Of a DNA stretch of 64,000 nucleotides, positions 2,508-64,000 are shown piece by piece. Position numbers and translations under genes: made by a program. The stretch comes from Bigelowiella natans CCMP2755 (Eukaryota; Protista; Cercozoa). The stretch lies in the NCBI GenBank assembly GCA_000320545.1, contig ADNK01002961.1:1-64000 (forward strand), read 5' to 3'. Position 1 is the stretch's first letter; each line of letters begins with the position of its first letter. Below the pieces are notes generated by a model. It made no database searches and had not been told where the DNA came from. It saw only the letters and a program-made list of their open reading frames with translations.

Positions 2508-2700
2508 CTGTTGTCACACCACACGCGCGGCGAGAAAAATTGCGTGCGTGCATGTGATACTAACAAGTCATGGAATGAACAAATCAAATAATGCCCGCAA
2601 CCAGCATGTACCATGTTAGCATAGCACGTCCGCAGCGCAATGCACTAGTACATGCCAAAGCAGCAGACAGCACCAGACACATGCACAATGTGCGCGCTAT

Positions 2701-2958
2701 TGCTGTGTCCACAACAGATGATGTTGGGAGATGCACGTGTGTGCGTGTTGCAATCATTGCATGTGACTTCCAACCTCAAGCCATCATTGCTGTTGCACCT
2801 GTGCGCAACTTGTCGTCACACACACAATTGCACAATGCAACAAACAGAAAAATGATGTCCAAATGTGATCGACAAAAAATGCTCTTCACACAACAATTGA
2901 TGTGCCATTGATTTTGTTTGGAGAGCACTTGTCCGTCATGTGAAGCGGCGTTGATCCC
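2701..2958. other. TpA-free tract in a convergent intergenic gap
   Basis: No TA dinucleotide found by eye in 258 bp of AT-balanced DNA. CA/TG are abundant and CG is still present. Confidence 0.85.
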
Positions 2959-3232
2959 TAGAACATAATGGGTGTTCTAGTCTGGCAGTACTGCTCCTCA
3001 TCCACGTGTGCAGCATGTAGGTGTGTGATGTGTAAGTAATAATAATAATGATTATTATAACTGCCAATGGCAGTGTGTGTGCAAGGCACACCTCGCAAAG
3101 CGATGCGACTATGTTATGCGACAGCATCATGCGATTGTATCATTATGCTGCATCATATTGCATTGTTATACTTGTGTTTCCCAGGGGGTGTTTTTCAAGG
3201 GAGGGGGTTCTATATATTAAAGTATGTAAGTA

Positions 3233-3279
<47 letters not shown>

Positions 3280-3414
3280 GTTTGGTGTTTGAAAAGCCCC
3301 AGAAGCCCTCATTAATTGTAAAATGAAGGAGGTAAAAGAAAGCACTAATTTAAGTGGGATTGAAATTAAAATGAAGAGGAAAACGATATAAAGAATTGAA
3401 TATTATAACATTAA

Positions 3415-3909
3415 ATGGAAGAGTTAAAAAATGAATTATTAAAAATAAGAAAAAACATAAAAATAATACAACTTGATGTCGCTAAAATGAGAAATAGTTT
3501 GAAAGAGGAGCATATCAGTATGGAAAAAGGTTGTGCTTTGGAGGAATAAATTAAAAATGATAGAAGAAAGTTATATAAATTGTTAAAAGAAGAAATGAGA
3601 ATAGCGACCAAAATATATAGAATGAAGAACAAAGAAAAAATGAAACAATACAGCAAAAACTACAGAGAAGCAAATAAAGAAAAAATAAATCAACAAAAGA
3701 AAGAATACAGAGAAGCGAACAAAGAAAAAATAAAACAATACAACAAAAAATATAGAGAAGCAAACAAAGAAAAAATGTTAGAAGAAATGAAACAAAAGGT
3801 AGATTGTGAGTTCTGTAATTGTGCTGTGACCAAAAAGCATTTACGAAGACATCAAAGAACCAAGAAATGTTTGAAAACAAGACAACAACACACACCAACA
3901 ACAAAGTAG
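3415..3909 (+). pseudogene. Lys/Glu-rich repeat + zinc-finger protein interrupted by one in-frame TAA
   Basis: ATG 3415 MEELKNELL...CALEE, TAA 3547-3549, then the same frame continues IKNDRRKLY...YREANKEK x3...CEFCNCAVTKKHLRRHQRTKKC. Confidence 0.65.
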
Positions 3910-3944
3910 AACATGCAAACATGTGTTCCTACCTATGAAACAAA

Positions 3945-4089
3945 CGATATGCCGTGCTAATACATATGCGACTGCTATTACGAAGCGATATGCCGTGCTA
4001 ATACACTGCTATTATGAAGCGATATGTCGTGCTGATACATATGCGACTGCCATTACAAAGCAATATGCTAATACATATGCGACTGCTAC
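3945..4089 (+). repeat. ~41-bp imperfect tandem repeat, 3-4 units
   Basis: cgatatgccgtgctaatacatatgcgactgctattacgaag and variants. Confidence 0.85.
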
Positions 4090-4193
4090 AACATACATAC
4101 TTAACAATATAAGCTATTAGCAAAAGGATTCCACTTTTACAAAACATCCAACTATGATTTCTATTTAAAGAATTGTCTCATTATAAGATTAAT

Positions 4194-4391
4194 ATGAGTA
4201 ATATTAATCAAGTAAATAAGAGTAGCACAGCAGATAAAATCTATGACATTGACGGTAAACTTAGTGAAATCGTCCTCGTAATAGATGAACTAAAAGCCGA
4301 ACTGAATCCTGAATTCTATCGCAAACTAAGAGATAAACTGATGGAAGTCCACATTTGTCTAATGAGCGAAGTTGTAGATGGTTATAAATAA
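4194..4391 (+). CDS. small hypothetical helical protein within the AT-rich insert
   Basis: MSNINQVNK...KLSEIVLVIDELKAELNPEFYRKLRDKLMEVH; protein-like composition, no recognised motif. Confidence 0.35.
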   Translation: MSNINQVNKSSTADKIYDIDGKLSEIVLVIDELKAELNPEFYRKLRDKLMEVHICLMSEVVDGYK

Positions 4392-4435
4392 CTGTATTTT
4401 CTCCAGACTGGACCCGATGTGTGTGCGGAAGCAGT

Positions 4436-6514
4436 CTACATAGCGATGCGAAGATACTCCCCAGATTTGTGTTCTTTTTCATCACCAGCACTCCCACCAA
4501 CAGCAAACAGTTTGCCATCCCCAACGGCCACACCCAAACCTTTCCTCATAGTATTCATATCAGGGATTTTCTTCCACCCCGCATTCACATTCTTCAAATC
4601 CAGATACTCCCCAGATGCGAGAGAATCACCACCACCAAACCCACCAACAGCAAACAGTTTGCCATCCCCAACGGCCACACCCAAACAACTCCTCCAAGTA
4701 TTCATATCAGGGATTTTCGTCCACCCCGCATCCACATTCTTCAAATCCAGATACTCTCCAGATTTGTGATAATTACTACGATCAAACCCACCAACAGCAA
4801 ACAGTTTGCCATCCCCAACAGCTACACCCAAACCATTCCTCTCAGTATTCATATCAGGGAGTTTCTTCCACCCCGCATCCATTTTCTTCAAATCCAGATA
4901 CTCCCCAGATTTGAGAAGATTACGATATCCACCCTCTCCACCAACAGCAAACAGTTTGCTATCCCCAACGGCCACACCCAAACCATCCCTCTTTATATTC
5001 ATATCAGGCAGTTTCTTCCACCCCGCATCCATTTTCTTCAAATCCAGATACTCCCCAGATTTGAGAAGATTACTACCGTCTTTAAAATGATACCCACCAA
5101 CAGCAAACAGTTTGCCATCCCCAACGACCACACCCAAACCATACCTCATAGTATTCATATCAGGGAGTTTCTTCCACCCCGCATCCACATTCTTCAAATC
5201 CAGATACTCCCCAGATTTGAGAAAATTACTACCATCATACCCACCAACAGCAAACAGTTTGCCATCCCCAACGGCCACACCCAAATACTCCCTCTTAGTC
5301 ATCATATCAGGGAGTTTCCCTTGTCTCAACTTCGCATCAGCCTCCTTCTCCATCCCGCCGACACATTCATACATCTCATCAGAGAATGTTAAAAATTGAC
5401 TTGCAGATAATGTGCTGTTTTGGACTTTCGGAATGGCTTCTATCAAGATATCCTTTAGATGTTGGTAAACCGATTTCTCAGAAGAAACACTGTTCGACTT
5501 AAATATTTCATCAGCTTTTGTAATTCTGAACACTTGGTAGACTCTACGGATTCGATTGATGAATGCTTCTCGACCCTCAAACATAGATTTTCCTGACGAT
5601 ACTTTCTTGATGTCATTCTGTAGTTCTTTGATGTCGAAAAGAGGTTGAAGGTAGATTTTAGTATCCTTTCGTGCAGTCGTTGACACACATATACTTGCAG
5701 CAATGATCCTATTGTCTAAATCCATCTGTTTGTTGTTGAATATGTCAACCGCTTTAGACTTTGCTAATTGGAACAGATCTTTTCTTTCTTTTGGGTTTCC
5801 TTGGCGGATAGCCTCTTTGAAAAGCTGGATTGCTCCTTTAAGTATTCCTTCTTCTTTTGCTATTATGAAGGATTCAATTCGATCTAATTGGGCTGTCACA
5901 GCCTCACTCCACTCTTTCCACTCCGCATCTTTTTTGGCTCTCCATCTCACACACCACTTGAAAGGTATAAATACAACCGTGCCAAGTGCAACCGCCAAAT
6001 CATTGTCCAAAAAGTGACTAACGACTTCGATACCCCCTTTGCACAACGAATAAATCTTTTGCCCCCCATCTTTCATTTCCAACACTTCCCCCAATGTGAC
6101 TACTCAAGGGGTCGCAAGATTGCTCGGTGTCATCTTCCCACTGATAAGATTGTAAGAAGTCTTGGAATCACTTTGGGTCCCACTTTCGTTGTGCTGCATC
6201 TGTGTGCTATTATGCTTCAATTCACAGGATATGTCCATTTTAAAGCCATTGTTGATGTTTCCTACTTTTCTAGTCGAAGGATTGGAATGGCCAGCTTTCT
6301 CAGAAGAGGTTCTTGGCCTTTTACTCCGTCCGCAAAAACATCCAAACCCAACGACACACAAAGCAAAAACGAAAAAGAGCACAAATCCTGCCAACAGCAT
6401 GAATGAATTTTTCTCAAGAACATTTGCATACTCATCCACACTGCATTCTTTTCCTGTGGGAGCATCGCGACTGCAATCGCCCAGTCCGAGCAAGCTCCAG
6501 AAGCTGCTGTCCAT
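4436..6514 (-). CDS. Kelch-repeat protein (6 blades) with helical N-domain; an upstream TM-bearing ORF is in the same frame behind one TGA
   Basis: Six repeats of PDM.T.R..LGVAVGDGKLFAVGG...SGEYLDL....GW. ORFs 6104-6517 and 4436-6094 share a frame and are separated only by TGA at 6104-6106. Intronless. Confidence 0.85.
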
Positions 6515-7070
6515 CACAAATCACCCTTCTACTGAATTGGAATTTTGCCATTTCTAAGAGTTTCTTGGCATTTTCACTAAATATCCACAAAAAATCCCCT
6601 GTCAACTTGCCCTATTTTTTCGGTTACTAGTATGTGTTTCAACAGGTTCATCAGTCCACTTCTCTCTCGGTTTCGGTGTTTTTTTCCCTATTGCTTTTTT
6701 TTGCCATTTCGTTTTTCAGCAGGTTTCAGTTGGTTCTTGCTGAAAGTTTTGTCTGAAACACCTTCCAAAATGCATCTTACAGGTCGGTCAGAGCTGATCT
6801 TTTTAGATTCCCTCGTAGGAAAATCCCTGTTGATTATTTATCAACGACATCTATTTTAACGTAATGCAATCAGAAAAAGGACAGTTCATATCGTGAGACT
6901 GAACATGGCGTTACACGCATGTACAATACGACATTACTTCAGAATTCAGGTACTCGTATGATGCAGGCATGATGCATGTCAGGTATTAATGAGACCACTT
7001 CGCCTCACATCAATCGCTTTCCAGCCCGCTTCACAGCCCGAGAGTTAGTAGCGCCATAAGGTCACAGACC

Positions 7071-11011: not shown

Positions 11012-14000
11012 TAATCAAGCAGGGCTTACCTCCAACGAATTCCGTACTCAGATAAGACACGATCCTGAATAACTTTCGTAGGTGCATACGCGGCTCTGAA
11101 GAAAGACGGTAAGGTGGTAACTTGGGGGGATCCTGGATACGGGGGCGACTCTTCTACGGTAAAGCACTTGCTGACCGGGAGGATCATTGACATCAAATCG
11201 AGTAAGTACGGCTTCCTGATGTTGAAAGACGACTACACCGCAGTTTGCTTGGGCCCTACTCAAACTATATATAGCTGCAGCATGGATAAGCTGAATTACA
11301 CCGAGTTGAGGCAGGGCCGAGAGAAAGGATTTGCACCACCCAAAGTGGTCGCAGCAGATGGACGATATGGCGGATATGCGGCGCTGGACGGTGAGGGCCG
11401 AATTTACGCACTCGGGGGGGCGGGACAAGTATCGGCATTCAATCAACTCAACAGTGAAGAGCGAAATGCTAATTATAGCGACATCTTTGGCTCGGGGAGC
11501 TCCTTCTTTGCCATCCCAAGAGGAAAGGGACCCCCTACCACATGGAGCATCGGATTTAGCACCCCTCCCACCACAGGATTTACTGCAGCGAAGGAGAAGA
11601 TGCGTCACCTCGACATTCGTAGCGTTAAGTCAAATGGTGCTTATTCTTTTTATGAGGCCTTTCTCGCTCTTTCGGAAGATGGGATGGTCGTCACATGGGG
11701 CTATTCTTCTTATGGAGGAGACGCCAGTACTGTACAGGCGCTCATTGATGAAGTAAAAGTGAAGGATGTGTTCACTTTGAGAGTATCCCTTGACAGCGCG
11801 AAAAAGACGCCCATATTTTGGTGCCTTCTTGCTACTCATGCGCAACTATAGCTTGATCTATCTTGGAGGAGGAATTTACAGACCACCCCTAGATGTGCAG
11901 GGAAAAATCGTTCAAATTCGATTCCAACCTGTCGTGGCGGCCTCTGCGAAGTCTTTCTTTGCACTTACGATGGATGGGAACATCGAATGCATCGGTTATA
12001 AATATGAAGCCGTGAATTCTAAATGCCCCAGAAATCTAGGGCCTGTTGTACAGGTGGTGGCAACTCTTCAGGCCGCTGCTGCTTTGTTTGCCAACGGCTC
12101 AGTCATTACATGGGGAAGTTCTTCTTACGCAACAGTGACATCCGAGGTTGCCAATCTATTAAAATCTGATGTGTTGTCCTTGTACGCTACGAACAAAAAC
12201 TTCGCCGCATTAAGGTCAGATGGAAGAATGGTGCAATGGGGTTACGACCAGCTCCCGAACGTCATCGAAAAGATTGAGAAAGTATTTCCACTGTGGGGGG
12301 GAGATCATTTCGCAGCCTCCTGCACGAACGGCGACACCTACTTTGGTGTGAATGAACCTTCCTTCAAGGCACCAGTGGCACGCTTATTTCGAGACGAGAA
12401 GGGTTTCATTGCCGTAGACGTTAAGTCAAACGTGTACTTCTGGGGGAGGTTTTACGACGCTGGGACATTCACAGCATTGGCAGATGTTCGGAAGAAATTC
12501 GCTGAACTACCCGTGATTGATGCGCAGCAGTCACCATCAGGCAAAGGCTATGGCGCAATTTTCTCTGACGGAACTGTAGGATTCTGGGGCTACAACTTCC
12601 AAAAATACACATTAAAGTCGGATTTCAGTGAAGTGGGAATAAAGCAATTAGTTGCTGGAGGTTCGGATGTCGGTTCGGGTTTCAGCGATCACTTAATGGC
12701 GATTAACCGTCTTGGCCAGTTTGCTAGTCCACGCTTTTCGTGGTATATCTACGATAGGGAAGTCGAAGAAGTACAATGTACAGGATTTTATTATTCTGTC
12801 TTATGCGCAGCTAAGCTATTAAATGATACGCTCACTCTACGGTTGCACTCTACCTCTACCTCTACATATTATAATCAATATTTGGTAAAGCCCAACGAAA
12901 CATACCTGGCAACGACAAAAGTAAAAAGTCTCGCTCACACCAGAAATGCGTTCGCGGCTTTGATGGCTGACGGTACCTTGCATACTTGGGGTCGCACTAC
13001 CAGCGAAGCCAAAATGCCTGATGATGTAAAGAGTCGAATCGAGTGGCTTGTTTCGAAAGGCGTAAATATAAAAGGTGTTTATGCTACCGAAGCCAGCTTT
13101 GCAGCCCACATGTCAGACAAAACGCTCATCACCTGGGGTAGGACATACTTGCGGGACGCGAACAAAGCTGAACGATGGAAAGGAATTGGAACCCTGCGAA
13201 GTTCATCTCGATTCTTTTTCGCCACATCTGATAAGAATCTCAATGTCTTCGGCTCCTGTTATCACCGTTCGTTTAATTACAAGGGTGCAAACCCTATCAG
13301 CACCGTGATTGGAGTGGACACCGCACTGGCAAATGACGATTATGATGTTCTCTTGTTTCAGAATGGATGGTTGGCTTTCAAAGTATATGATAGGATTAGT
13401 AAAAACGATTGGATGTTTCGACCTAGATGGGGTATCCTGCGAGCTGTTTCTTCAAAAAAGGCGATAGCCACTATCACAACACCTTTTAAGGTTTGTTACA
13501 GAGTAGAGCAGTTTTCATGCGAAAACTTTGTATTTTTCATCAAATTCTCTTCCACCAACCTGGTATATGGAGAGAATAGCTAACATGCGTATGAATGGAT
13601 GAATGTATTTTTTTTGAAACTCTCGATTTCGAGGACGACATCGTTATTCTCGAACATCATATCTCGATATATTTCGATGCGAAGCCGTACGCGCTTTTAT
13701 TGTTTCGCTCTTGTTATGTTCATATACCAGCCTGTAACAAAGAGCCCTACAACGAAGATCCTGACGACCACGTCTCCAGCTACAAACTCCCCGTCGACGC
13801 TTGCCCCTTCGTTCAGCCCTTCCACTTGCAGCCCTTCCACAAATGCTCCAATGGTCATCGAAGCAAGGCTCTCGGATACGCTGCAGTACATAATACTCAC
13901 CTTCCACAGGCCAACGAACACGCCTACGGAGGACTGTGCGGTGCTCTTATCTTCTGCAACGCTGGGAAAGCTTGGTAGTATCTGTTTATAGTTATGCCTT

Positions 14001-14282
14001 TTACAAACAGCGATTAACTGTTCCATTCAAAGGCAATTTGTCTCTACGAACTTGATTTGAGAAATAGTGTTATTCATCTGTAATCACACCCCTCTTGAAA
14101 ACGCTATATGATAGTATTTGTTTGTTTCGATGTGAGAGAGGTGTGATGACGTCGTTGTTATTTTTGGCATTGCCTCGTCTTTAGGGTCAAGCCCGACTTG
14201 CATCTGGGCTACTCCGAGTGTCTTATGGGTGTATTTTAGTAGAGGTTTCACCATTCGCCTTGGTAATATTACGTTGGTGCTA

Positions 14283-14341
<59 letters not shown>

Positions 14342-17300
14342 AATGCAATAGCTCAGCCAAGTATGACTACCACGCCATGTAGATCTTACACAATATGACC
14401 CCATGTGTACGCTGTGCATTACAGGTGATATGGTAGTATTTCGTGAAGAAGTAGTAACGCTTGATAGAGGAGGAATGGCCAACTTCCAAAGTCAACAGCC
14501 GCTCTTACGTCCAAGAACATTGTCGCCTGACCCCGCACCAACGCTGATCGCTCCCCAGACCGTTGGTGCCTGTGACGAAATCGACATCGATGCATCTACC
14601 TCCACAGGGGCTTTCGGCTTGCCTCTGACCTTTGAATGGAGGTACTTTGGCCCTGCTTCCTCGTCGCTGCGGGCGTTTGTGCAGATGCAGGACAGGTCGA
14701 GATTTAGTTTGCTAGGCTCCAACCTCACCGTGGGTGCGCACACATTCAGTGTACGCTATACAAACTGGCTGAACGACAGCTACAGCGCCGAAACGGTCGT
14801 GGTGCGCACACCGATGGATGTGCCTATCGTGACAACGTTTTTCCCTGACTACGTCCAGATAAAAACCTCCCGGGATAACGTTCTCCGCACCGAAATCGAT
14901 GCCTCTTCATGTTCTGTCTCTAAGAGTTCGGCCGTGAATCGAGTCAGTTGGTCATTCTTGGGGCCAAATTCGACGTACCTCCATCCCTCTGTCGATCGAT
15001 ACCGCAAGCACATCACGCCGTTGACAACAGAGACCACACCGAGCCTACCAAACCCTAATTCGGTGTTTCTGAGCATCCCACGTCACACGCTTACGATGGG
15101 GTCTATCTATGCGTTGCAGCTCCGTGTCGAAACGTTCGTCGCAGATGTGAAGCAAATTGGCATAAACTACACATTCATTATGAAGGCTGTGGACGAGCGC
15201 GTTGTGGCGAAGATCGGAGATGGGAGCTTAGCGAGAACCGTCTACGTCCCAAATTTGATTGGCTCGGATGACGATTTTGACGAGGGTTTGAGGCTAGACG
15301 CATCAAAGTCTCATGACCCGGGCTCCCAATATCCTATATCACAATACCATTGGATTATCCAACGCACTGACGACTTCAGCAATGTCCTCCCTTCTACAGG
15401 GAACATCTCCATTATTAGCAACGAATCGATCGCTTATGTGAATCGAAGCACATTGGTGTACGGCAGGTATCGCGTAACTTTGACAGTCTCATGCCTCCCC
15501 GCCTCGGGCCGTTCGTCATCGGCCAGCGACAACAACGCAGTTGCAAATTATGGCAGCGGCAACAACACTAATTGGAGGACTTCAACAGCTATTCAATACA
15601 TACGAATTGTGTCGGTAATGGTACCGAAAGTAACCATAATCCGCAGCACAGTGCCTAAACGCCTTGCTGACGTAGAAAAAGTTACTCCTGGAATGAAGCT
15701 ATCGTTTAGCGCTAATGTTTCTCTCTCTTCAGACTCGCTATACACTTATGCGTGGAGCAGTAACGCCATGCTGAACGACCAGACTTTGTTGACCAAGGAC
15801 ACAAACTGCACGTTGTTAGTACTACGGCCGCACACTCTGACGAGTGGGAAGAGCTATCAATTTCGCTTGATGGTTAGGGATGTGACGAGTGGAACTTATG
15901 CAGAATCCGTTGCGAACGTAGTTGTAAATGCTCCTCCCACTCTTGGCACCTGTTCCGTATCACCAAGTCGCGGGGTGAGCATGCACACCAAGTTTCGTTT
16001 CGGCTGCTCCGAGTGGGCGGACGAAGACGTTCCTTTGCTATTTGAGTTTCGCGACGCGAGCCGATACCCATCCTTCCCTTTGAATAGATTCCAGCAGAAA
16101 TCATACTTTTCGACGCTGCTCTTCGCTCCCAATGAGGATTCGAGGCGGTTCATCGTAGTTGCTCTTGTACAGGACGCGTTAGGCGCTGCTGTGACCTACA
16201 ATGACTCTGCCCTTCACCCGTTAGTTAATGGTCAAGACGGGAGTGTTGGAAATACCCACAGCAATGTTACAGCCTTCCTGAGCGAGATGGAGGCGGCAAG
16301 GGCCATGGGAAACATGATCCGTTTCGGTTTGTACTTCCGCGCAACTCTGGCTTCGGTCGACAAAAGCTCGACGATAGATACGTCTGTGAGAGATAATCTA
16401 TTTAGTTTTGCAGCGGATATAGCTGATGATCCGTCATTGCCCGTAGCTGACGGCTCGAATTTCGCGTTAGAGTTGCTGAGCGAGATTACCGACTTTCCAC
16501 CGGAAAAGCCTGAGGTTCTATCCTCCAACCTCCGCAAGAACATACTTGGACTCCTAGATAGGATGGTTGTAGAAATGGGCAGAAAGGGGGACGGGAGGTC
16601 TTCGGCTCTTGCTCTTGTGGTGGTAACTGCTTCTCGAGTGGCCGACTCAGTAGGAGATATCCGAAAACTTTCCGCCCCGATATCAGCCGCCCGGCTTCCA
16701 AGCAATGTTTCTGACACAGAGCGCATCGCTGTGGCGGAGAAGGTCGAGCAAATGCTGGTGAACGCCACGCATGTCTTGTCTACTACGGTGAGCGTCGGTG
16801 AGCTTGCAGCTAAGCTGTATACACCAAAGGCAGTTCTGTTGGCGCAGAAGTTTGCAGCGGAGAATGCTGCCGGCGCAACTATTGTAGAGTCATTGGATGA
16901 TGAAGCAGGTGACGAGGGGCAGTTGCAATCTATTTCTCAAGAGCAAAAACTATCGATTTCACTGCCTGAGAGCTTCTCTCTCGATGACAATTCTGCCATC
17001 CTCGGGGCATCGGTCGTGTGGCTTAAATCGAGGCCTTATCCTTCCACAGGGTCCTTATCATCTTCGCCGGGAGAAGAAAGCCTGCGTTTGCATTCTCAGC
17101 TGACTATTGAGCTGCAGCAAAATGGCCAAGACTTGGAAGTCAACAATACACAAGATCCAATTGCTCTGAAAATACCATTAGGTGCTGCAGAGGGATTTGA
17201 CTACAGATCTTCTTTTAATCCCGTCGCAGGGGGGGGGTTTACTTGCGAGTATTGGTCTGTGAGCGCCAGGCGCTGGCAAACAGATGGAGTGTTCTTAGCT

Positions 17301-49114: not shown

Positions 49115-49153
<39 letters not shown>

Positions 49154-50445: not shown

Positions 50446-51777
50446 TTAGACTCCGGTAGAACCTGCAGTGGATCCTTCGTTGAACTGAGCAGAAGATGTG
50501 TCGTGCAAAGGGGAGGGGCCTGAGCGAGCCTTGTCAACCACACTTGGCTTCAAGCAGAACTTGTAGACACATGCGAACACAATAGCGCAGAAAACAATGG
50601 CGACTGCAATCGAGATTCCGGCCATAGCTCCTGCACTCATTTGGTCGTCATCATCATCCCCGCCGCTGCTTGCAGGAAGGAATGGCGCGTTCTTCTCCGC
50701 GTCGCAATTCACAACATAAGTCCTATTGAATTCGATGTTGCAGCCCCCGAGGCAGATGTCCTCAAAAACATGGAATCCAGTTTCAATCACCTCCGGAATG
50801 TCAGCGTCGCAGCAAGAATCGTGGTGCGCGACAACAGCGTTCCAAGCCGCCTCACAGGCCGCTGATTGGCAGTTGTCAAGGCTGCAACCGTTGGAGGCTT
50901 CGTTGAGAAAGTTCCATTGGTCCAACACCGCTGCCTGGTTCTCGCAGTCAACTACGCCGCAAGACACGAGCCCGGGGGTTTGGTACGGAGCAATGTAACA
51001 GTGCTGGCAGAAGGGCTCAAAGTCATGAATGCCTTCCTCAATGTTCTGAGGAATGGCATTCGCGTTGCAGCCGGAGTGGTATGATTCGACAATGAAGTAC
51101 GCGTCCTGGCAAACGGGGTTGTCGTAACAGTTGCAGCCCACATTGCACTCATTCTCCACCAAGAGGTTGAAGTTGGTAACAACGCGGTCCATGTCCCTGC
51201 AGTTGACCAGGCCCGCTACGGTGCACTCGCAATCCGGATTAGACTCTGGGATCTCGTCGCAAGTGTTATCGTGCCCATGACCGTGACCCTCTTCCCCATC
51301 CTCTGTAAGAGTAGCGAAAAACTCAATATCTCCATTGTCCGCGTCGATCAGGAAGTGAGCGTCGCGCTCAAATTCTGTCGGAACATGCGCCGTGTAAAGC
51401 CCATAAGGCCCTGCAGTGATAATCGTGAAGGGGTAAAGGCTGTCGAGTGCGCTTTGGTCGAAGACAAGAGTGACCCCAGTGTCCAACGGAAACATTTGGC
51501 CTGCAGTAACCATTTGAGTAGGTGCTTGGATTAGACTCTCCGCGTTGGAGGAGGCAGCCGTGAGAGCAGCTGCAGAGGTGTTTGTCAACGAAATCAGTGC
51601 AATGGCCATTTCGGGATCGGCGTAGGCTGCTTCCAAGAGAGGGCAACCCACCTTTTGGAATCGGAGAGAGTAGCTTCCCACCGGAAGCTCAACGGAGCCC
51701 GCCCATTCGAACTCCGCTGAGGCTAGGGGGGGGGCCAAGGCGGCGGCCAGCAGGAAAGAGAAAAAGCGACTGTGCAT
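50446..51777 (-). CDS. Type I membrane protein with His/Cys-rich ectodomain, putative metal-binding; intronless
   Basis: Signal peptide MHSRFFSFLL; FEWAG..YADP..AHVPTEFE..HFL domain; GHGHGHD linker; two Cys-rich repeats (C..A...V..(Y/H)H..C....IP..IE.G.H.FE..C); one C-terminal TM. Confidence 0.75.
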   Translation of the reverse strand: MHSRFFSFLLAAALAPPLASAEFEWAGSVELPVGSYSLRFQKVGCPLLEAAYADPEMAIALISLTNTSAAALTAASSNAESLIQAPTQMVTAGQMFPLDTGVTLVFDQSALDSLYPFTIITAGPYGLYTAHVPTEFERDAHFLIDADNGDIEFFATLTEDGEEGHGHGHDNTCDEIPESNPDCECTVAGLVNCRDMDRVVTNFNLLVENECNVGCNCYDNPVCQDAYFIVESYHSGCNANAIPQNIEEGIHDFEPFCQHCYIAPYQTPGLVSCGVVDCENQAAVLDQWNFLNEASNGCSLDNCQSAACEAAWNAVVAHHDSCCDADIPEVIETGFHVFEDICLGGCNIEFNRTYVVNCDAEKNAPFLPASSGGDDDDDQMSAGAMAGISIAVAIVFCAIVFACVYKFCLKPSVVDKARSGPSPLHDTSSAQFNEGSTAGSTGV

Positions 51778-52321
51778 ATTCGAGGTAGAGGCCTTTCGAG
51801 TTGTGACAGCTCGGGCAAGATTTGATGGGAAGCGACCTCGCATTCTGCGAATCCGAAACCGGCGCCCAGCCTGGCTGCGGCGAAATTTGCTGCACGGGTG
51901 CGAATAGCCCGTTGTGGGAGATGGGTATCCCCCGATTTCCGGAGAGAATTCGAAAAATTTTCATGTCGCGCATAAAAAATAGCATTAAAATTGGAAATTT
52001 CTTCTTGTAATTGGAGTACTCTTATTTCCCTCCTCTCTGTGCTGCAGCGAGCGCGGCGTACTCGTGCCTTGCCTACGCGCAACGCAGGGCGTTTTTCGCT
52101 CTGGAGGGACGGAGGGGGGCCCGTCGGAGCGCTCGTTAGGGACTGGCGGAGATTGCTCGTTTCACAAAATGCCACAGAGTGCGACTGCGAAAGGAAGTGG
52201 TTCTGGAAAGTGAGGGGGATTTGCCCGAGCCGAGCTCCAAAAACGCTGCGTTTTCGAAAGCGCCTGAAATCGTCGAGAATGCCAATGAGCCATCGTCATC
52301 GAACTGGGAGGGCGCGTACTC

Positions 52322-53431
52322 ATGGCACGTAAAGCCTCGGAGAGCAGATGCGTGTGGCATTCTGGTGTTCTCACTGCAGTCATTGTAGCTGTTCTCGCCA
52401 TCACTGGGGGAGCCGTAGGGGAATCTTTAGCCAACGTGCCCGTTCCTCGAAAAGGAAAGCTAATCTCAATGCGAAAATATGCTATTGATGTTGACCGATT
52501 ACTCCTCTCGCGTGATCACTGGCCAGATGTTGATGAAAATGTGCACGTAGCAGCCTCGAAACTCGCAGCCACTTTCATCTCCTCCAAACTCGACGCAACC
52601 TTGGCGGCGTTCCTCGAGGCGTCAGCTGCTGCAACTGCTAGTAGGTGGGGGCAGGTCGTAGCATACGCCAAGCAGCATGCATTCTGGTCGTTGCAGCGAT
52701 ACCTCGGATGGAGTTGGACTGACGCATCTGCTTTCATGGAAATGGCGAAGCTTCATGTTGCGTCAGAGGAGCAATTGCGACGATTATTACTTGGACATGA
52801 GATCGCAGCCGGAAGTGTCGAAGCAAATCCCGTAAGGTTGCTAGACATTGGTGCTGGCGCAGGGTTAGTCACAGATTCCCTCGCAGCTTCGTTAAATATA
52901 ACCGATAGGACAAATGTCGTATGTGTTGAAAACTCAGGCGCTTTGAGGACAATTCTTAAAAAAAGAGGCTATAAAGTGGTTGCCCCTGACGAGTTTTATG
53001 GCGGCAGATTATCGTCGGAAAAGTTCGCTGCAGTTGCGCTTTTGAATCTCCTCGATCGTTGCGATGAGCCTGTTGCGCTCCTGAACAAAGCTCTAGGCAT
53101 GCTGGCACCAGGAGGGCTATTGTTCATAGCAACGGTGCTGCCATTCAATGCGATCGTTCATGAGGGGCAGTTAGGTTCGAAGTGGGGGAAGTCATCCTGG
53201 CGTCTGCCTCGCTCGCCGATTACTTTCAGAAGTATACTTATTAGATCGAAAAAAAGCGCATTTGAAATCAAATTAGCGATCTTCTTGGAGGCCATTCACC
53301 GGCACCACCCACATCTGGATTTAATGAGCTGGACTAGACTTCCATATGTATCGTCAGGGGATACCGTGAGAACACATTTTGCCCTTGACTCCGCGCTAAT
53401 GGTATTTCGCCAGCCGTACTCTGACTGGTGA
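52322..53431 (+). CDS. METTL9: DREV/METTL9-family protein-histidine N-methyltransferase with N-terminal hydrophobic segment
   Basis: MHV-like LHVASEEQL, RLLDIGAGAGLVT, LNLLDRCDEP, WTRLPYVSSGD....FALDSALMVF match the DREV family pattern. Confidence 0.85.
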   Translation: MARKASESRCVWHSGVLTAVIVAVLAITGGAVGESLANVPVPRKGKLISMRKYAIDVDRLLLSRDHWPDVDENVHVAASKLAATFISSKLDATLAAFLEASAAATASRWGQVVAYAKQHAFWSLQRYLGWSWTDASAFMEMAKLHVASEEQLRRLLLGHEIAAGSVEANPVRLLDIGAGAGLVTDSLAASLNITDRTNVVCVENSGALRTILKKRGYKVVAPDEFYGGRLSSEKFAAVALLNLLDRCDEPVALLNKALGMLAPGGLLFIATVLPFNAIVHEGQLGSKWGKSSWRLPRSPITFRSILIRSKKSAFEIKLAIFLEAIHRHHPHLDLMSWTRLPYVSSGDTVRTHFALDSALMVFRQPYSDW

Positions 53432-53660
53432 ATCTAAGAGACATTTTGATATTTCTTTTGTAAGCTTGCTGCGCCTGTCAGAAACTGCAGCAGCTGAAAC
53501 GATTAAATCTTTGACGCTCGTGCTGCATGCTCTAAAAACATGCGAAACTTTTATAACGGCAACTCCATCGATCTACTTAACGATTCATCACATAGATACG
53601 AACACAATGTTTTCGTCATTAGATCAATGGTTACAACACCATGCAATATCACAATGAGAG

Positions 53661-53995
53661 ACTAGCTAGCTAGCACACTTTCACGCAGCTCTAGAGCTTT
53701 GCTTGTAGAATGTAGGCTAGCTAGCTAGCTTTTATTGTGATGTAATGTCAATCTAGCAATGTCTGCTAGTCTAGTAGTCTAGCTAGAATTACAACAACAC
53801 TAGAAACACAGCGAAGTGCCAACAGCCACTAATTAGCTAGATGAAGCCGTGAAATGCACACCTAGCAAGTAAGTTCTAGAGCTTGCTAGACATCTGTTAT
53901 GCCTAGATGCAGAGCTAGTGAGCTAGTGGAGATGCTAGTGGTTTTCAGGTTTGTGCGCGCCAACATACGACTAAATGAATGTTCTCAATTCTAGA
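53661..53995. other. CTAG-dense intergenic tract
   Basis: About 22 CTAG in ~335 bp by manual count; roughly 1-2 expected by chance. Confidence 0.9.
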
Positions 53996-54386
53996 CTGCA
54001 ATTTTGCCCTACACCATTGATCGTGATGAATCGCTCAGCATTTGCATGCATGTAGCAACACATCAATGACGTGATAGCTAGGTTAGCTTTTGCAACAAAT
54101 GAGGCACAGCTTAGGCTTGCTATCGGGAGATAAAAAAAAAAACAAATTAAAAATCAACTAATTCAAATTGGTCTCGCATCCTCTTTGGAAGAGAGACATG
54201 TCAACATTGACATAGAGAGTTTTCTGTTCATTGTTCTTCTCATTTTAGTTGTGAGTTAACCCAAAACTCAGAATGGATACTAGATGTTGTCTTCGCTCTG
54301 ACGAAAAAAAAACAAGGTTTCAATTTTGAAATAATGTGCCATGACAATGTGTATCCAGCACGTCTAGATGTGAAGTACAAGCACGG

Positions 54387-57127
54387 TTAACAACTGTGTA
54401 CCAAAGCTTCATCCACAGTTGATCTACAACCATAACACATTCGAATGTGTCCTACTCTTGGGCGGCCTATTTGTAAATAGGTAACTTATGTGGACTCATA
54501 GGAAAGAACTTTTATGATATATCTGCATTAAGTAAATCGATTTTGTAACTCCTATATTTCATTCCACACCACTGATTGGCATGAGATCCGATCCGACTTT
54601 TAATGTGCAGTTGTTACAAAATATTCCTATATACATTTGTACTAATAGCAGAAATTACAACATAGAAGTTGATCAATTTGATACTTACGTCCACATATTC
54701 GACAGTGATGCCTCCGAAAGAATAGTGAGAACGTTCTTAGACAAATCTTAGGTATTCATCAAAGTTATTTTTAAAATATAATACCAGTGATCTAGATTAC
54801 ATGGCACTCAAGAACGTGATCATTCTTTTCCCAGTGCATCCTAGTCTGTGCAAGCTTTGTAAATAGCTTCCTCAGGTCTTCTAGCTGAAATTAAGTTCAT
54901 TGTAATTGATAACGATTATAGAACGGAAAATATATATTTGTCTAACCTGCAGTGACTTTTGCATTGGCGTGACTCTAATATCCAACTCGTTGCGATGCCC
55001 GATTTCTATTCTATTGATCAATCTTTTCTCACTGGACTTTTTCCTAAGAGCAAACAGCCAAAAACATATATAATAATGTGTACAGATAATTATGTTTTAC
55101 TTATTATCAAACCGTTCATCATCAAGGCTCCTAAGTTGCAGTTTGCTTGATTTGAGATTTGTAGGTGCAGAGACCACACTATGAATTTTTATATAGTTTT
55201 TTGCTTAAAATTAATTATATATTTATTCATTATGAACTATCATACTAAACCTGGTTGAATCCTGTCCTACTTTGCATACTTTTTGTTCTGATTCATTCAG
55301 AGTCGATCTCGGCATTGTCTTATTTTCCATATCGGGTGAGGCGGAAGTTCTTAACTATTTAATGTAGACTAATTAATACCTTGAAAAGACAACTTTAGCC
55401 ATATATAATTACATCGACGTTCAAAAGATTATGGATAATGAAGTTTTGTTTCTTTCATAGCGTATATTCTTTCTTTGCAAATACATATATGAATTTTGCA
55501 TACCGCCAGGTGTTGAAGATCCCTAACCTAAACATGAGAGTAAAATAAATGATTGTAAACAAGATATTAAAATAGTAGCTTAGAAAATCATAACCGTCAT
55601 TCTACTTCTTCGCGACATGCTCAATTCGCTGCAAGATAATTTCAAAGATCAGATTTTCCCTAAGATTTAAATATTAACTTACTGGGGAATAGGTTGGCTC
55701 TCCCGTGATCTTGACGGCGACTCTGGTCTTATACTATTATTTCTGCCCCCATTAGGTTAGGGAATGGATATTCTATACAGGCTTCGTTTAAACTAGGTTA
55801 CCTTTCATGACGAATGTAGTAATCCAGTGGAAGAATAACAGATTCGCTTACACTTTCTCTAACAGGCACCGTTCTGAATAGTTACACTTAAATGTAATAT
55901 GCAACTCTTATTAACTTATTGATGAAGTTATGTTTGTAGACTCTTAAAAATATGAAAAATGATATTGGGTTGATACTTATCGATGTGTTCAGGAATCACT
56001 GTCGGAATTTTTGCATGGGGAAGCTGTTTATGGCACAGATGACTTAGCTCTTTCTTAAATGAAATTCAAGTTTAAATGTATACCTGAGCATCGGATGACA
56101 CTCGCGCTGGTTCAACTGAAAACTTGCTATGCTCATAGTCTATAGTAACCAAAACATTAGCTTTCACATAAGGAAAATTATGGTTCATATGTGGCGCTCC
56201 ACCGTTTTCATAAGCATAATTTTCAGCATCATCGCTTTCACTACTCCTTGCCAATGAAACAGACTGTAACGGTAATACTGCATTAACCGAAAGAAATTTG
56301 AGTTTATGATGTATAATACCGTCTCCATTGTTTGAGCAGAAAAAAATCCATGCTTTTTCACCCTAATCACAACGCTGTTATGCATATGTTTTAACTGTAC
56401 AAAATCCTTACTTGAAGAGATCTTTAATATTTTTGCTTTTATGCTGATGATGCTTTGACTTGCTAGAACTACTAAATCTATTAAAGCTCGCCAGCATCTC
56501 AGCTCTTAGTGGAACCTCCCCACGTATCTTTTGTAATTCCTCCCTTTAATTAAAGTATTCAAAAGCAATTAAAACCCACATGGATAATACTGATAATCTA
56601 ATAATACTTATTTTACCAGAGGCGCGTAGCTTCATTAATAGCATTTTGAGCTATTCTTTTCATTTCCTTTCGTCATTGGTCCAGCATATTATAAAACTTC
56701 ATACAACAAGTTATAAGAGAGTTCTGAGTACCAGATAATCCGACTTTGCAACAAGCTCGGCATTAAGGGATCCCGATGCACTGCATGATCTTAACATCTT
56801 ACGATTTTTCCCTCGCATGCTTTAGAACATATAATTTAGCATCGGTAAAATCAAACTCATATGCCTCAGATAATCATTTTACCTGCACCGATGACAATAC
56901 ACATGACCACATGTTTTACAACATGTTCCTTCTCTGCCGTTTGTGATTGCCGTGTAGCAGGAAGAACAACGGTCAGGCGTACTCATTAATAGAGGCGGTA
57001 TTACTTTGGAAACTGTTAGAATACAATGGTGCATACCTCATGCGCATATCAAAACCTACAAGCAAATCTCTTCGTTACCATTCCGTTTTTCCTCTCTTGC
57101 CCCGTAGCGTAGACCGTTGGACTCCAT
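54387..57127 (-). CDS. FYVE zinc-finger protein (canonical C-terminal FYVE, degenerate N-terminal FYVE-like finger), many short introns
   Basis: Spliced C-terminus MHWEKNDHVLECH/ICLRTFSLFFRRHHCRICG/RIFCNNC../..RMCYGC, stop at 54387-54389; N-terminus CSSC..CCKTCGHVYCHRC. Middle exons not fully resolved. Confidence 0.8.
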
Positions 57128-59128: not shown

Positions 59129-59167
<39 letters not shown>

Positions 59168-62100
59168 TATAACTGTACAATATCGTTAATAAGTACATGT
59201 TAATCTTATAGATTTTGTGCGCTAATATGGGGAGGTGTCGAAGAAAGGTTTGCCTGTTGGTTTTGCAATTAAGCACACCTGAAAACTCGTATTTCAATTG
59301 CAGATTTGGCCTTACTTATGGCATTGTGGGATCGTACACAATCATGCTTGGTTCTGCAATCAAATTATGATAATGATTTATGAGTCTTTCATTAGTTTGA
59401 TGCGATTTTTCTGGCAGGAGTATATATTTATCTTTTCGAGAAGGTACTGTTTACGACACGCAGCCCAAGGTAGCATCCACATAATTTCAGTTGAACAAGC
59501 GTAAAATATATTCTTCAGTGCTATACCTTACCGAGGGCTAATGTATTTTATCGTTGGATTTCCACTATTCATCGCTTATCCAACAATAATAGCTGGGGTA
59601 ATCTTTGAAACCATTTTTGTCTCAAAAAATATAATCGTTACACGTCTTAGGTTTGTGTATACATTACTGGATTTGTTCAATGTGTATCTGCATTCTATGA
59701 AGAATCGGTGCAAACTTAACATACACGGTAATTTTGTGTGAAGATAGTGAATAAATGCGTATGCTAGGTAAAGCCAAAGAAACGGAAGACAATGGCTAAA
59801 GCTGCTCCAGTAAAACCTACTGGCGACGCAACAGATTCTAAATCCCGTAAATATACAAATCTAACGGTTGTATTCGCTTATTTTGACTTTTTGTTTTTTG
59901 GCGGTAAGCTGTTACAGCTAGTAAGATGAAAATACTTGCCAGTAATGGAGGAGTGGATCTTGTGGAACAAGATAGTAGCACTTGGTGTGAGGTTCTATTC
60001 ACAAATTATGTTCTATATGTATTGAATTTAAAAGTTAAATTAACTTAAAGAGCTTGAAAGCATGGTTAATTTACTTGCAAAATACGAACAAACTTGGAAC
60101 TAAGGTTATTACGCTTTCATGCTGCATAAGAATGTTATCGAGTACGTGACTGGAAATACCACCATTTACTTCTTAGTTGTTTATTCTTACCTACATCATC
60201 GGGAATATCATAATCTTCATCTTTGCTGTAAGATAATTTAGATGCTTTTGGATTGTTCTGAGTGGTCGTTTTAATTTCGTCAGTTACAACTTTGGTTCAT
60301 GATCAATGACGAACTTGACGTAACAGAATCAAATAGAACCAAATCCTTTGTAAACAATACCTACATGTAATGTATGAAAAATAAACTAACACCAGGAAGA
60401 AGATAGGATTAGTGGGGCTGGACCTTTTGCAAAGGGGTACCTTTTTTGACGGTTCCAACCTACATTCGTTAAAATCTTGAATGGTAGGTTTGGATGGACA
60501 CTAGACTTCAACTGCGCGATGATTCTTGTAATCCGTTGAGAAATATAAATATATAAATGCGATGTTAGCTTGGAAATGATGGAACTTGTTTTTAACTTTA
60601 AGGTTCCAGTGTGCCGGAATCTCTTGTCCATTATTTACGATTTTTCCAACTCAGGGGTTGTCTGATTCAATAATACATATCACAAATGTGCTAAGCAATA
60701 TTTTCCAATAATTGTAGTATTGCCTCGGAAAATGCTTGGCTCCTATCGTAAACTTAAAACCTGCCAATGTTTTGAGCCTGTGGAAGTTCAATGTTATACT
60801 TCAGGTGACATTCATTCCTGTGGATAAAAACATTGCTTTCCATAAATTCATCGCTTATATTATGGCAGGGTAACTCATTAAGTTTATAAGTTCTATGCTG
60901 TTTAAGAATTGATATTGATTTATATTTTATTACCATGAATAGGTGTGCCGCTGGACATATGTTTTTCCATTTTGTAAGATCTGATGGTAAAATTTCGTTA
61001 AATGAAGCTAAGAGTTTCTTAAATTCAGATAAACTACATTTTGAGACCGGACCAGACAATAAGTCTTTTCGGGGTTGCATTTACAATTTCATATCTCATT
61101 AGGAATTTAAACATTATCTGACTTTACTTAAGATTGTACCATGGTATACCGGAGGACTTATTGTTGTGTGCATCTTTGTCATATTTTCTGGAGGGCAAAG
61201 TATGTGAATTGGCCAAAATTATTTTGGTTAAAAGGAATAAGATTTTAAATATGCTTAGGAAAGGTTCGGAGGAAACAGTTCGAAATATTTTGGTAAAATT
61301 GGTAAAGTTCTATTCGATCTCCCCTTAAATACAATAATACAGGTACACACACATATTTGTATTTCCTCTTTTCTTCATTCTACTTCTGATTCATGGAAAA
61401 GGAGGTATTCCAAATACATCTGCATCGAGGCAATTGCTGTGTAATTTGATGCATTATTTAAACTAGGATGGAATCCGAATTTCTGGAAGTGGTACGGTAT
61501 TCCAGTGAAACTCAGTTTACTTTGATTTACTTTGATGATAATATATAAGGTTCATAGTACCTGCTGTAATGTATGCAGCTGAGCGTATTGTAACTATTCG
61601 AAGAACACGGAAACCGGTTGTTCCTCCTTAATCAAGTTTTGTTGACAACTTGTTTTAATTTTTAGTCTAAGATTTATTTATCTAAAATATAGGTTACGTT
61701 ACTGTCAGTGACATCAATGAAGCCAAATGTATTTTCGTTGGAGATTGAAAAGGTGTATCTCTGGTTTAATACGTGTATTTCACTTATTCTAGTTTTATAT
61801 TTTAAGTCTGGTCCGTTCGAAATGAAAACAAATGGCCGGGAACCTTACTTTGAAGGTATCAGAGTTGTTAGTTGCGGCAATGAAATTATATTATTTTGGT
61901 CATTGCGAAGGTCAATACTGTTTTATCAATTGCCCGCATTTGTCCCAGTTCCAGTGGCATCCCTTCACGTAATCCTATTTCATGTGTGCACTGATTTGAT
62001 TCTGATGCAGATTGCTTTTCTTTTAGCATTTCATCTGCTCCCTCCGACAAAACTATTACATTCCATATTCGTAAATCGATTCCAGGGTAAAATTAACCAT

Positions 62101-63738
62101 GAGAATAATAAGTGAAATGATTATTTTACGTAATTAATTTTGCAGATCATGGACTGATGAGCTTCATGAGTATGTTGCAAACGGGATTGAATACTGACTT
62201 AACATTTAAAACAAGTAAATATATTTCACAGCTATCTTCTATCTCTTGGAAACTCTAAGAGCGGAAGAGTAACATTCTCAAGGAATAATGGAGCACAAAG
62301 GGTAATAATATTTCGGTTAGGTTTAGTCATTATCATGTGTTATCTTCTATTGGTTATGAAGGTTTCTGGCAAAATCATTGGTCCAGACGGATTGCCCCTG
62401 CTTAAAATTGATGGCCCGCATTCAGCCCCGACCCAGCACATATCGAAATATAAGAATGTCATGGTGATTGGAGCAGGTATTTTTTCTTTTTATCGGTTAA
62501 TGAATAGCATATATACTTAATTCGTTTATAGGTATAGGAGTCACTCCGGTTGCTTCCGCTTCCAAAAGTGTGGTGTGTAAGTTTGGACAACATTTTATTC
62601 TTGCGTCATTTAATTCAGAGTCTTAATCAGGTTTTCCATAAGTGGCGTACTGCAGTGGGAGAAGTATTCCCAAATAATGGTCGCTTCATTTTCAGTAATA
62701 TGCTTTCGCTACTTAAAGTTTTTTTTTAAATTATTCGTTAGGCTATTTCTACTGGGTTGTGAGCCACAGAGATGTGGATTCGTTCAGATGGTAGTATTCA
62801 TCTGAATGAAAAATGCCAGTTACTGAAATTCTTAAATGTGTATAGGTTAATTCGTTTGATAAAAGATTGTCAAGATGAAGTAGATTTCAATTATCAATGT
62901 GGTCTTCAAAAATACATGAATCAAATTAACGATAGGTCAGCCATCAGAGATCAAAGGCGGCTTCAGTTTATGTAAGCATTTTATTAAGAAAAGGTTTTTT
63001 GCTCATCGCCATTTGTTCTAATATCTTAGCAACACAAGTTCGAATTCCATATATTCGTAACCTCGGCAAAAAATCCAAAGCCAGTCAAGTTGCACATTGC
63101 CAAAGAGGATGTATGGATATATTCATATAAACTCTTAGGCAACAAATTAAGTATAATCTGCCTATAGGAATTATCTTTCTGGGGGGCTAGAACAGAGGAA
63201 GGGGGTATTGCAAAGGCTAAAGGACCCTTTGATGAGTCGACACTATATTCTGCTCTTAAGTGTCCTATTTTTGGAGAGGTGTCCAGATTCTTAGTATATA
63301 AAATTTCTGATTGACATGTAGACCGATGTAGGTGAAACAACTTGGTAATGTTTACGTCCACAATGGTCGGCCGAATTGGAGGGCTGAATTTGCTCGTGTA
63401 AAGGTATCATTTGAACTTATGTTCACTTTTAAGCTTCTTTAATATCCTTATATCGCTTCAGGCATACCATCCTGAAAGCACAGTTGGCGTGGCATTCTGC
63501 GGAAACGAGCACATTGCGAAAGATTTGAAGCGGTAGTGCTATCTATCAATTTTATTGAAATCAAATTATAAAGAGCGTTTAGTTGTTTTGAACTGTTCCA
63601 AAAGTATGTCAAACACCATGGCATCATTAGTTATAAAATATCCAGAAATAATTATCTTCCTTTCTTTGCAGACAATCGGCCGCTTTTAGTAATGTGGAAC
63701 AGAACAGCTTGTTTAGACTCCACCTTGAAAACTTCTAA
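57411..63738 (+). CDS. NADPH oxidase with fused N-terminal SH3 and p22phox-like domains; dozens of ~50-70 nt introns
   Basis: SH3 ARADFAF..LEMQIGDIITII..GGWWRGKLNGVEGFFPITYC; heme motifs FHKFIAYIMAGCAAGH and FEIFWYTH..LIHG; FAD motif QWHPFTISSAP; NADPH motifs DGPH, GAGIGVTP, YFYWV, GRPNW, FCG and terminal ENF*. Confidence 0.92.
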
Positions 63739-64000
63739 GTCACATATCAGATGATGCAGTTTCATTCCTACGTTTATTATGTTGTGATCATCATAAATTA
63801 GTTCGCATTATCAAGTTTTTCAACCAATTACAATTTGCGCATTGGTGTCACCTCTTTCACCTTTCATTTCGGTCAGTACAACATGCAAGCTGTCATCATG
63901 ATGTGTCACAACATCGACGTGTCAGCGTAATGCACAGAATGATTCGAATCATCACAACATGCCAAATCAAATGATTGGAACCCCTGTGTGTCAAACTCAT

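Follow-up and report, generated by a model that had tools for sequence, protein, structure and literature searches.

A stretch of 64,000 nucleotides of the cercozoan Bigelowiella natans CCMP2755 (contig ADNK01002961.1, positions 1 to 64,000 of the forward strand; hereafter the window) contains nine zones in which the dinucleotide TA is replaced by CA and TG, each of them lying in a gap between convergent gene ends. The loss of TA together with the excess of CA and TG in these zones is confirmed as genuine, and the zones are very probably footprints of the TpA to CpA/TpG mutator that Mettrop et al. (Mettrop, ..., Piganeau and Krasovec; bioRxiv 10.64898/2026.01.13.699255) have described in this species. 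We consider it somewhat the better bet that the mutator is directed by a positional or silent state of the DNA rather than by foreign origin as such, and to both claims jointly, the identity of the mutator and its targeting, we assign a probability of about 0.52. The process itself is already known, and what the window adds are new targets and details.

In the mutation accumulation study of Mettrop et al. (10.64898/2026.01.13.699255), an integrated nucleocytoplasmic large DNA virus (NCLDV) and an insert of virophage origin mutate about 1000 times as fast as the rest of the genome, with changes almost only at TpA, to TpG or CpA; 231 mutations are viral and 71 non-viral. The same preprint reports 124 genome-wide clusters, of at least 3 kb, of 1-kb windows poor in TA and rich in CA+TG, and finds that coding sequences (CDSs) low in TA are enriched in transposon domains. 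Its authors name a homologue of ADAT2 as the candidate enzyme, propose adenine deamination as the chemistry and read the process as a defence against foreign DNA. A sequence-only reading of the window, which the present analysis follows up, had taken the erosion for an undescribed process; the experimental demonstration in B. natans by Mettrop et al. (2026) removes that part of the claim. A literature search on TpA erosion at convergent genes yields this preprint only, and its text does not mention CTAG, 3' untranslated regions (UTRs) or convergent gaps.

Nine eroded zones and their gene flanks

The zones were located by a scan blind to genes, in which 300-bp windows with an observed/expected ratio (o/e) of CA+TG of at least 1.5 were retained. 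The scan recovers the nine zones marked in the sequence-only reading, a few single-window blips and two zones of the contig past 64 kb. Once runs of (CA)n, (TG)n and (TA)n are masked, all nine zones have a CA+TG o/e between 1.39 and 2.12 (Table 1), in a window that overall has 44% GC and a TA o/e of 0.77. Recounting gives exactly the numbers of TA reported earlier, namely none in 2701-2958, 10 in 19571-20640 and none in 50063-50380, with binomial probabilities of 6e-8, 1e-12 and 1e-9, respectively, the reference being P(A|T) of the whole window adjusted for how much A each interval contains; the string quoted earlier from 19901-19930 is also present. A two-state model of TA density returns four strong tracts (2700-2955, 19283-20679, 49704-50948 and 63834-64146), and TA loss is strong in 2.5-2.96, 19.57-20.64, 43.0-44.5, 49.5-50.45 and 63.8-64.15 kb. 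It is partial at 23.9-24.6 and 35.95-36.8 kb (TA o/e 0.76-0.86), so that the earlier statement that TA drops in every such gap holds mainly in the form of an excess of CA+TG. At 53.6-54.4 kb the depletion becomes visible only once CTAG is set aside, when TA o/e goes from 0.80 to 0.45. CG is kept, as had been noted: its o/e is 0.5-1.0 in the zones, and in the strong ones TA o/e is 0-0.3 while CG o/e is 0.6-1.0.

DNA of other kinds in the window does not carry this signature. Four head-to-head gaps have a CA+TG o/e of 0.83-1.25, six coding sequences one of 1.0-1.25, and the introns that were checked are equally free of the signature. The observation that head-to-head gaps and introns keep their TA, including (TA)n runs, is borne out. 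None of the 20 runs of (TA)12-17 in the window falls inside a zone; such runs persist 1-3 kb away. These microsatellites are uniform in length, with 12-17 units at the 20 sites (e.g., 968-1001, 14285-14314, 22008-22039, 37481-37504 and 49119-49148), and they sit in introns and 5' gaps, often directly adjoining (CA)n or (TG)n.

The tail-to-tail orientation that had been claimed for the nine gaps is supported at 14 of the 18 zone flanks, which are gene 3' ends; no flank contradicts it, and none is a verified 5' end. Orientation was called from Pfam matches, RNA joints and chains of open reading frames (ORFs), because classifiers built on codon usage or on a third-order Markov model, with long ORFs as the training set, proved too weak, especially for AT-rich genes.

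Table 1. Eroded zones, control gaps and neighbouring elements of the window (strand as + or -; copy number from searches of the whole assembly, with the interval searched in brackets).
Feature	Position	Composition	Setting	Flanks with orientation support	Copy number
Zone 1	2510-2960	TA-erased; TA-free in 2701-2958	spacer 3' of Sel1-repeat gene (+); adjoins multi-copy element at ~3004	two (Pfam)	single-copy (2510-2960)
Zone 2	19569-20640	10 TA, 4/10 of them CTAG	starts at stop codon of REJ-domain gene (14403-19568, +)	one	two other copies in the genome
Zone 3	23851-24681	partial; CA+TG o/e 1.78, TA o/e 0.76	between + gene ending at ~23.85 kb and septin gene (-)	two (splice sites by eye; septin)	
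Zone 4	28000-28850	partial; TA o/e 0.53, CA+TG o/e 1.67	3' of SUN-domain gene (+)	one	single-copy (28000-28850)
Zone 5	35950-37025	partial; CA+TG o/e 1.73-1.78, TA o/e ~0.8	3' of sulfatase gene (-)	one	single-copy (35900-37030)
Zone 6	43013-44500	TA o/e 0.42, CA+TG o/e 1.53	ankyrin-repeat gene (+, ORFs 39.9-43.0 kb) versus DUF285/PT-repeat gene (-)	two (ankyrin ORF chain; DUF285)	single-copy save one 95-bp match (42900-44600)
Zone 7	49505-50445		entire stop-to-stop gap of two expressed convergent genes	two (RNA)	single-copy (49650-50460)
Zone 7 core	49822-50364		spacer between two poly(A) sites; RNA depth 0 in both assemblies, ~0.2 in 3'-tag reads		
Zone 8	53432-54296	CTAG-rich; non-CTAG TA o/e 0.50	between METTL9-like gene (+) and - gene	two (RNA)	single-copy (53432-54300)
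Zone 9	63601-64000, on to ~64250 of contig	TA o/e 0.23, CA+TG o/e 1.9	3' of NADPH-oxidase-like gene	one (right flank unverified)	
Head-to-head control	51844-52321	CA+TG o/e 0.83			
Head-to-head controls	26071-26460; 39072-39900; 6518-7000	signature absent			
Tandem (+ +) control	13584-14402	TA o/e 1.04, CA+TG o/e 1.06	5' of REJ-domain gene; 53 TA sites the same in both paralogues		
Relic gene fragment (-)	20133-20575		in zone 2; homologous to residues 733-872 of 1320-aa ORF C3187:167380-171339, integrated giant-virus region (tblastn E 3e-25)		
Multi-copy element	3004-6800		Lys-rich ORF (+), Kelch ORF (-)		at least 30 copies, 80-97% identity, many on small contigs

Sequence context and polarity of the change

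The fate of a TA depends on its neighbours. Survival was expressed as the ratio of TA by flanking bases between 22.3 kb of strong tracts on four contigs and 244.6 kb outside them. Since CTAG was ignored during tract calling, its count is unbiased, and its ratio is 1.38; CTAA (0.22), CTAC (0.20), GTAC (0.17) and GTAA (0.13) follow, and then TTAA and ATAG (both 0.09), ATAA (0.08), ATAC (0.05) and ATAT (0.03). Log survival is approximately additive per strand, with a loss rate of A set by its 3' base of about 2 for T, about 1.2-1.3 for A and C and about 0 for G. These values follow a one-strand rule for the loss of A, TAT > TAA ~ TAC >> TAG, under which CTAG alone is spared because it reads TAG on both strands. 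The TAs that survive in the cores are found in CTAG, CTA or TAG. No transcription-coupled strand bias, with TG on one side of the gap and CA on the other, is seen across gap quarters, in which the counts of CA and TG are 187/192, 234/214, 207/216 and 193/171; as CA and TG match in every quarter, nothing indicates a process coupled to a single transcribed strand.

Low-complexity DNA of the (GCTA)n or CTAG-rich kind occurs only in eroded zones (53660-53960 and 50027-50038), where all four (GCTA)n-type runs lie, and zone 8 holds 24 CTAG in 865 bp (53.4-54.3 kb) with (GCTA)n runs among them. This confinement likely arises because (GCTA)n is the sole TA-containing microsatellite that the mutator cannot destroy; in the zones (GCTA)n runs are maintained and grow, as the context rule explains, and (TA)n runs are not.

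The direction and regional nature of the change can be read from a 6.7-kb segmental duplication, which links positions ~13830-20580 of the window with C2763:19133-12246 and holds a gene for a 1721-aa REJ-domain protein with its flanks, the CDSs being ~97% identical. The comparison took in every dinucleotide at which one or both copies have TA, together with those at which CA in either copy faces TG. Such sites have changed at 0/53 positions in the 5' gap, 19/218 in the CDS and 17/19 in the 3' tract (Fisher 1e-14). The differences in the 3' tract comprise eleven sites with TA in one copy and CA or TG in the other and six split sites where CA faces TG, of which the 5.2-kb REJ CDS has none. Each split site implies one ancestral TA that was resolved twice, independently. 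When the alignment is divided into bins, 5-12% of the sites are changed in those of the CDS, 4/18 in its last 500 nt and 12/14 in the 330 nt past the stop codon; the deep tract must have been erased before the duplication, because no TA sites are left there to compare. To judge from these paralogues, TA-specific transitions continued after the duplication in both copies and on the 3' side only. Polarising substitutions between repeat copies, a check suggested with the sequence-only reading, accordingly returns an excess of TA to CA/TG changes in the 3' tract, and the strand-symmetric, regional A:T to G:C transitions at TpA proposed there are upheld by the contrast of 17/19 with 0/53 sites. On C2763 the corresponding tract extends over 2.45 kb, continuing into DNA unrelated to the window. 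A 49-bp tandem duplication in zone 3 (24145-24242), in which four of eight differences are TA against CA or TG, is compatible with the mutator, though weakly so.

Transcription around zones 7 and 8

RNA data cover 48700-54600 and consist of two assemblies (X15 and X17) and raw stranded 3'-tag reads (X22). The left, plus-strand gene of gap 7 has an intron at 48913-49231 (GT..AG) that is spliced out in both assemblies, and its poly(A) tail begins at ~49821, 38 nt past a retained TGTAA (49783-49787). On the other side, RNA contigs of the minus-strand gene (50446-51843) end at ~50365, and an AGTAAA (50378-50384) stands ~15 nt before this RNA end. Few TAs outside CTAG remain along the borders of the TA-free core; those of TGTAA and AGTAAA belong to them, and the two motifs may serve as UGUAA-type poly(A) signals.

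Both genes flanking gap 7 are covered by RNA in the three data sets and the core between their poly(A) sites is not. This core is the most fully erased part of the zone, with a non-CTAG TA o/e of 0.05 and CTAG making up 7/9 of its TAs. Over neither 3' end in gap 7 do the stranded 3'-tag reads contain antisense or read-through RNA, and the suggested link to convergent transcription as such gains no support. Erosion in zone 7 runs ~500 nt into the CDS of the minus-strand gene; both in this gene and in the REJ gene the final 300-600 nt have a reduced TA o/e, and counts by codon phase are too small there to prove filtering by selection. At zone 8, the right-hand neighbour of the METTL9-like gene lies on the minus strand, as seen from its CT..AC introns (54297-54402 and 54465-54569), and the gap at 53.4-54.3 kb is thus convergent.

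Probable identity with a known mutator, its chemistry and its targeting

The footprint agrees with the hypermutation of Mettrop et al. in target (TpA), products (CpA and TpG), species and the formation of kb-scale domains poor in TA and rich in CA+TG. The composition agrees as well: TA makes up 5.97% of dinucleotides in the window, compared with 6.0% in the rest of the genome in the preprint, and the 72-kb viral-like region C3187:100001-172000, which is TA-depleted throughout, has 3.37% TA and a Rho_TpA of 0.46, compared with 3.3% and 0.45 for the NCLDV region (10.64898/2026.01.13.699255). The region on C3187 is probably that same hypermutable insert; an NCLDV major capsid gene (123904-125217; Pfam Capsid_NCLDV, E 8e-45) lies there among long ORFs only tens of bases apart. 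Strong zones of the window fall within the preprint's thresholds (Rho_TpA at most 0.43 and Rho_CA+TG at least 1.52), and in both settings the erosion is regional and sharply bounded, in the window by the step at the REJ stop codon. The targets differ, being viral inserts, transposon-like CDSs and clusters of at least 3 kb in the preprint and host-gene spacers of 0.3-1.5 kb here, several of them single-copy and untranscribed; the flanking-base rule is a further difference, and the process is known here from its footprint and not from de novo events.

Other processes resemble the erosion in part. Fungal repeat-induced point mutation converts C to T mainly at CpA, creating TpA and lowering GC, needs duplicated DNA and is premeiotic. 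It, too, is a regional hypermutation by transitions at a particular dinucleotide and results in compositional islands of kb scale, but in B. natans TA is lost, CA/TG and GC are gained, and single-copy DNA is affected while adjoining multi-copy elements are untouched, so that this process was rejected for its opposite direction and its targets. Under-representation of TpA and UpA is also general in genomes, and it is visible as a mild depletion across the whole window; this depletion is genome-wide, however, and does not leave 250-550 bp of untranscribed DNA devoid of TA and correspondingly rich in CA+TG. Deaminases of the ADAR, ADAT and TadA type convert A to I, which is read as G, and prefer a 5' U/T neighbour, U33-A34 being the natural tRNA substrate context of TadA/ADAT2. 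ADAR differs in preferring a 3' G, the base that here protects TA. ADAR/ADAT-type enzymes act on RNA, and activity on DNA is known only from engineered editors and from special cases that the preprint cites. The genome has one A_deamin (ADAT1-like) gene, in whose N-terminal 349-aa ORF no double-stranded RNA-binding domain was found, and five or six CDA/TadA-like loci.

The sequence thus shows kb-scale domains in which TA steps of both strands have their A replaced by G at a rate set by the next base; the chemistry is plausibly a deamination of adenine that yields hypoxanthine in DNA, carried out by an enzyme of the TadA/ADAT2 kind, in line with the preprint's proposal. In the window these domains are the promoter-less stretches between convergent gene ends, with the untranscribed spacer between poly(A) sites as their core; erosion crosses the 3' UTRs and fades within a few hundred bases of CDS, and selection plausibly retains needed TAs in CDSs and at the likely poly(A) signal TGTAA. 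Targeting would follow a silent chromatin or positional state, which viral or repeat inserts may nucleate, which can spread and which promoters and active gene bodies would exclude.

That no special mutator is at work, and that TA-poor, CA/TG-rich sequence is a selected property of 3' UTRs or terminators (avoidance of UpA, of spurious poly(A) signals, or motifs such as UGCAUG), is very unlikely. The zones do coincide with gene 3' ends, a TGTAA is kept 38 nt before a mapped poly(A) site, and UpA depletion is widespread in mRNAs. Yet TA loss is fullest in DNA that is absent from RNA, which selection on mRNA cannot explain; the tandem gap 13584-14402, expected to hold a 3' UTR, retains its TAs; the paralogues lost the same ancestral TAs independently after the duplication, one to CA and the other to TG, which is unexpected under long-standing selection; and the silent viral insert bears the same signature. 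The mutation has moreover been observed arising de novo (10.64898/2026.01.13.699255). The sequence-only reading's own alternative of UpA selection in 3' UTRs falls with these results. Still less credence, next to none, is due to the idea that the tracts are copies of one TA-poor repeat family or a product of chance: zone 2 has two other genomic copies, but copy-number searches show the other tracts to be single-copy and mutually unrelated, which rules out a single intrinsically TA-poor family, and chance would require probabilities of 1e-7 to 1e-12. As to chemistry, the same footprint could arise by modification of the T of TpA (TET/JBP-like, with 5-hydroxymethyl- or 5-formyluracil mispairing with G) or by error-prone repair at TpA, under either targeting rule. 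This is improbable, though less so than the two preceding alternatives. TpA is self-complementary, so that a T to C change cannot be told from A to G opposite and the products are strand-symmetric in either case; no distinctive DNA adenine deaminase was found among the ADAT1-like and CDA/TadA-like loci; 5-formyluracil causes T to C changes and dinoflagellate 5-hydroxymethyluracil favours TpA. The context rule can equally be stated as 'not C before T' and is non-decisive in this respect; the U33-A34 context of TadA/ADAT2 and the ADAT2 homologue named in the preprint argue for adenine.

The more serious question is targeting. The same mutator may be aimed only at foreign or mobile DNA and spread a few hundred bases from it; convergent gaps would then be the places where insertions survive, as elsewhere they would break promoters, and the single-copy tracts would be old insertions without surviving relatives. 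This is a real possibility, if not the favoured one, and zones 1 to 3 speak for it. Zone 2 holds the fragment of a gene from the NCLDV region, and its core, fragment included, was erased before the duplication while the 330 nt immediately past the end of the REJ CDS followed later (12/14 sites), as if erosion had spread outwards; zone 1 adjoins the multi-copy element, and zone 3 contains a high-copy repeat of ~87 bp. By contrast, all nine 3'-3' zones carry the signature, and gaps 5, 7 and 8 are single-copy along their entire stop-to-stop length and free of coding relics (in gaps 1, 4 and 6 the parts that were searched are single-copy). No ORF of the tracts, in the window or on the other contigs, has a Pfam match of transposable-element or viral type. 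TA loss alone would leave copies 85-90% identical, which are easily found. Beside erased unique DNA, TA is retained both in the multi-copy element (3.0-4.4 kb) and in the 87-bp repeat, and intact reverse transcriptase/RNase H ORFs on C3187 are unerased. Under the silent-state reading, viral inserts and the spacers between convergent poly(A) sites would be where such a state occurs in a compact genome. This reading is favoured because all nine zones are marked, at least three of them are wholly single-copy and the repeats adjoining erased DNA are untouched. Both readings can be merged, foreign DNA nucleating a silent state that would spread until an active gene is met. More tentatively, the mutator may be aimed not at foreign DNA but at a state common to every promoter-less, untranscribed convergent spacer and to silent viral inserts; its enzyme could then read 5'-TAH-3' on double-stranded DNA without strand bias, and B. 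natans would be editing the DNA of its own termination zones.

Besides the foreign or repeated DNA in and beside zones 1 to 3, several observations weigh against the favoured reading. Orientation is supported on one flank only at gaps 2, 4, 5 and 9, and in the two zones of near-background TA o/e erosion is seen from the excess of CA+TG alone. The claim that erosion is confined to tail-to-tail gaps stands within the window and fails outside it: on C2763 the gene that follows the tract behind REJ, an EF-hand gene, has the same orientation as REJ, and the tract stops ~250 bp before it; the giant virus integrated on C3187 is eroded throughout. In a test on 257 kb with anchor ORFs, 6/9 convergent gaps carry the signature, as do 3/12 divergent and 5/14 same-strand ones; the NCLDV region and the sparseness of anchors confound this comparison. 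In one DNA run of 2025, taken as contigs, 48700-54600 shows no new variants against the reference, in a region where few TAs are left to mutate. Finally, deaminases fused to chromatin domains, for which a search had been suggested, were not found in the ORFs inspected, which were ADAT1-like and CDA/TadA-like, other deaminase clades not having been searched.

If the footprint found at every tail-to-tail gap of the window holds genome-wide, it would mean targeting by chromatin state or position and not by foreignness, and the gene 3' ends of B. natans would evolve under strong local mutation pressure towards GC. Work on the system would then need to turn to chromatin marks, to small RNAs and to termination zones, and a general mutator of silent DNA would recast the published 'antiviral genome editing' and supply a sequence rule for finding the enzyme, which the TAH-versus-TAG rule and the absent strand bias constrain in concrete terms. 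The window adds to the preprint that short host spacers present in one copy are targets, that the core between poly(A) sites is untranscribed, that TAH is lost and CTAG spared, that the two strands are affected alike, that erosion sets in stepwise at a stop codon and that multi-copy elements can stand unerased beside erased unique DNA.

The repeats that border the eroded DNA have features of their own. The element next to zone 1 is TA-rich, with a TA o/e of ~1 in 3.0-4.4 kb despite its erased neighbour, and comprises an AT-rich, Lys-rich ORF with a Cys/His motif (+, ~3550-3906), a tandem repeat of ~40 bp (3920-4100) and a 552-aa Kelch-repeat ORF (-, 4436-6094; Pfam); it may be a provirophage- or transpoviron-like or another mobile element. 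The ~87-bp repeat of zone 3 (23856-23942), directly after the gene end, has more than 1400 candidate copies, of which 40 were scored (90-96% identical), keeps its TAs and resembles a miniature inverted-repeat transposable element or a short interspersed element. Intact reverse transcriptase/RNase H ORFs of a retrotransposon of the long-terminal-repeat type (C3187:177111-181097 and L019:2173-4377) have normal TA and adjoin erased tracts of 1.3 and 6.2 kb. At 22260-22390, a long CT-rich/(CT)n tract stands just 5' of the first exon of the plus-strand gene at 22.4-23.85 kb and may be a promoter element.

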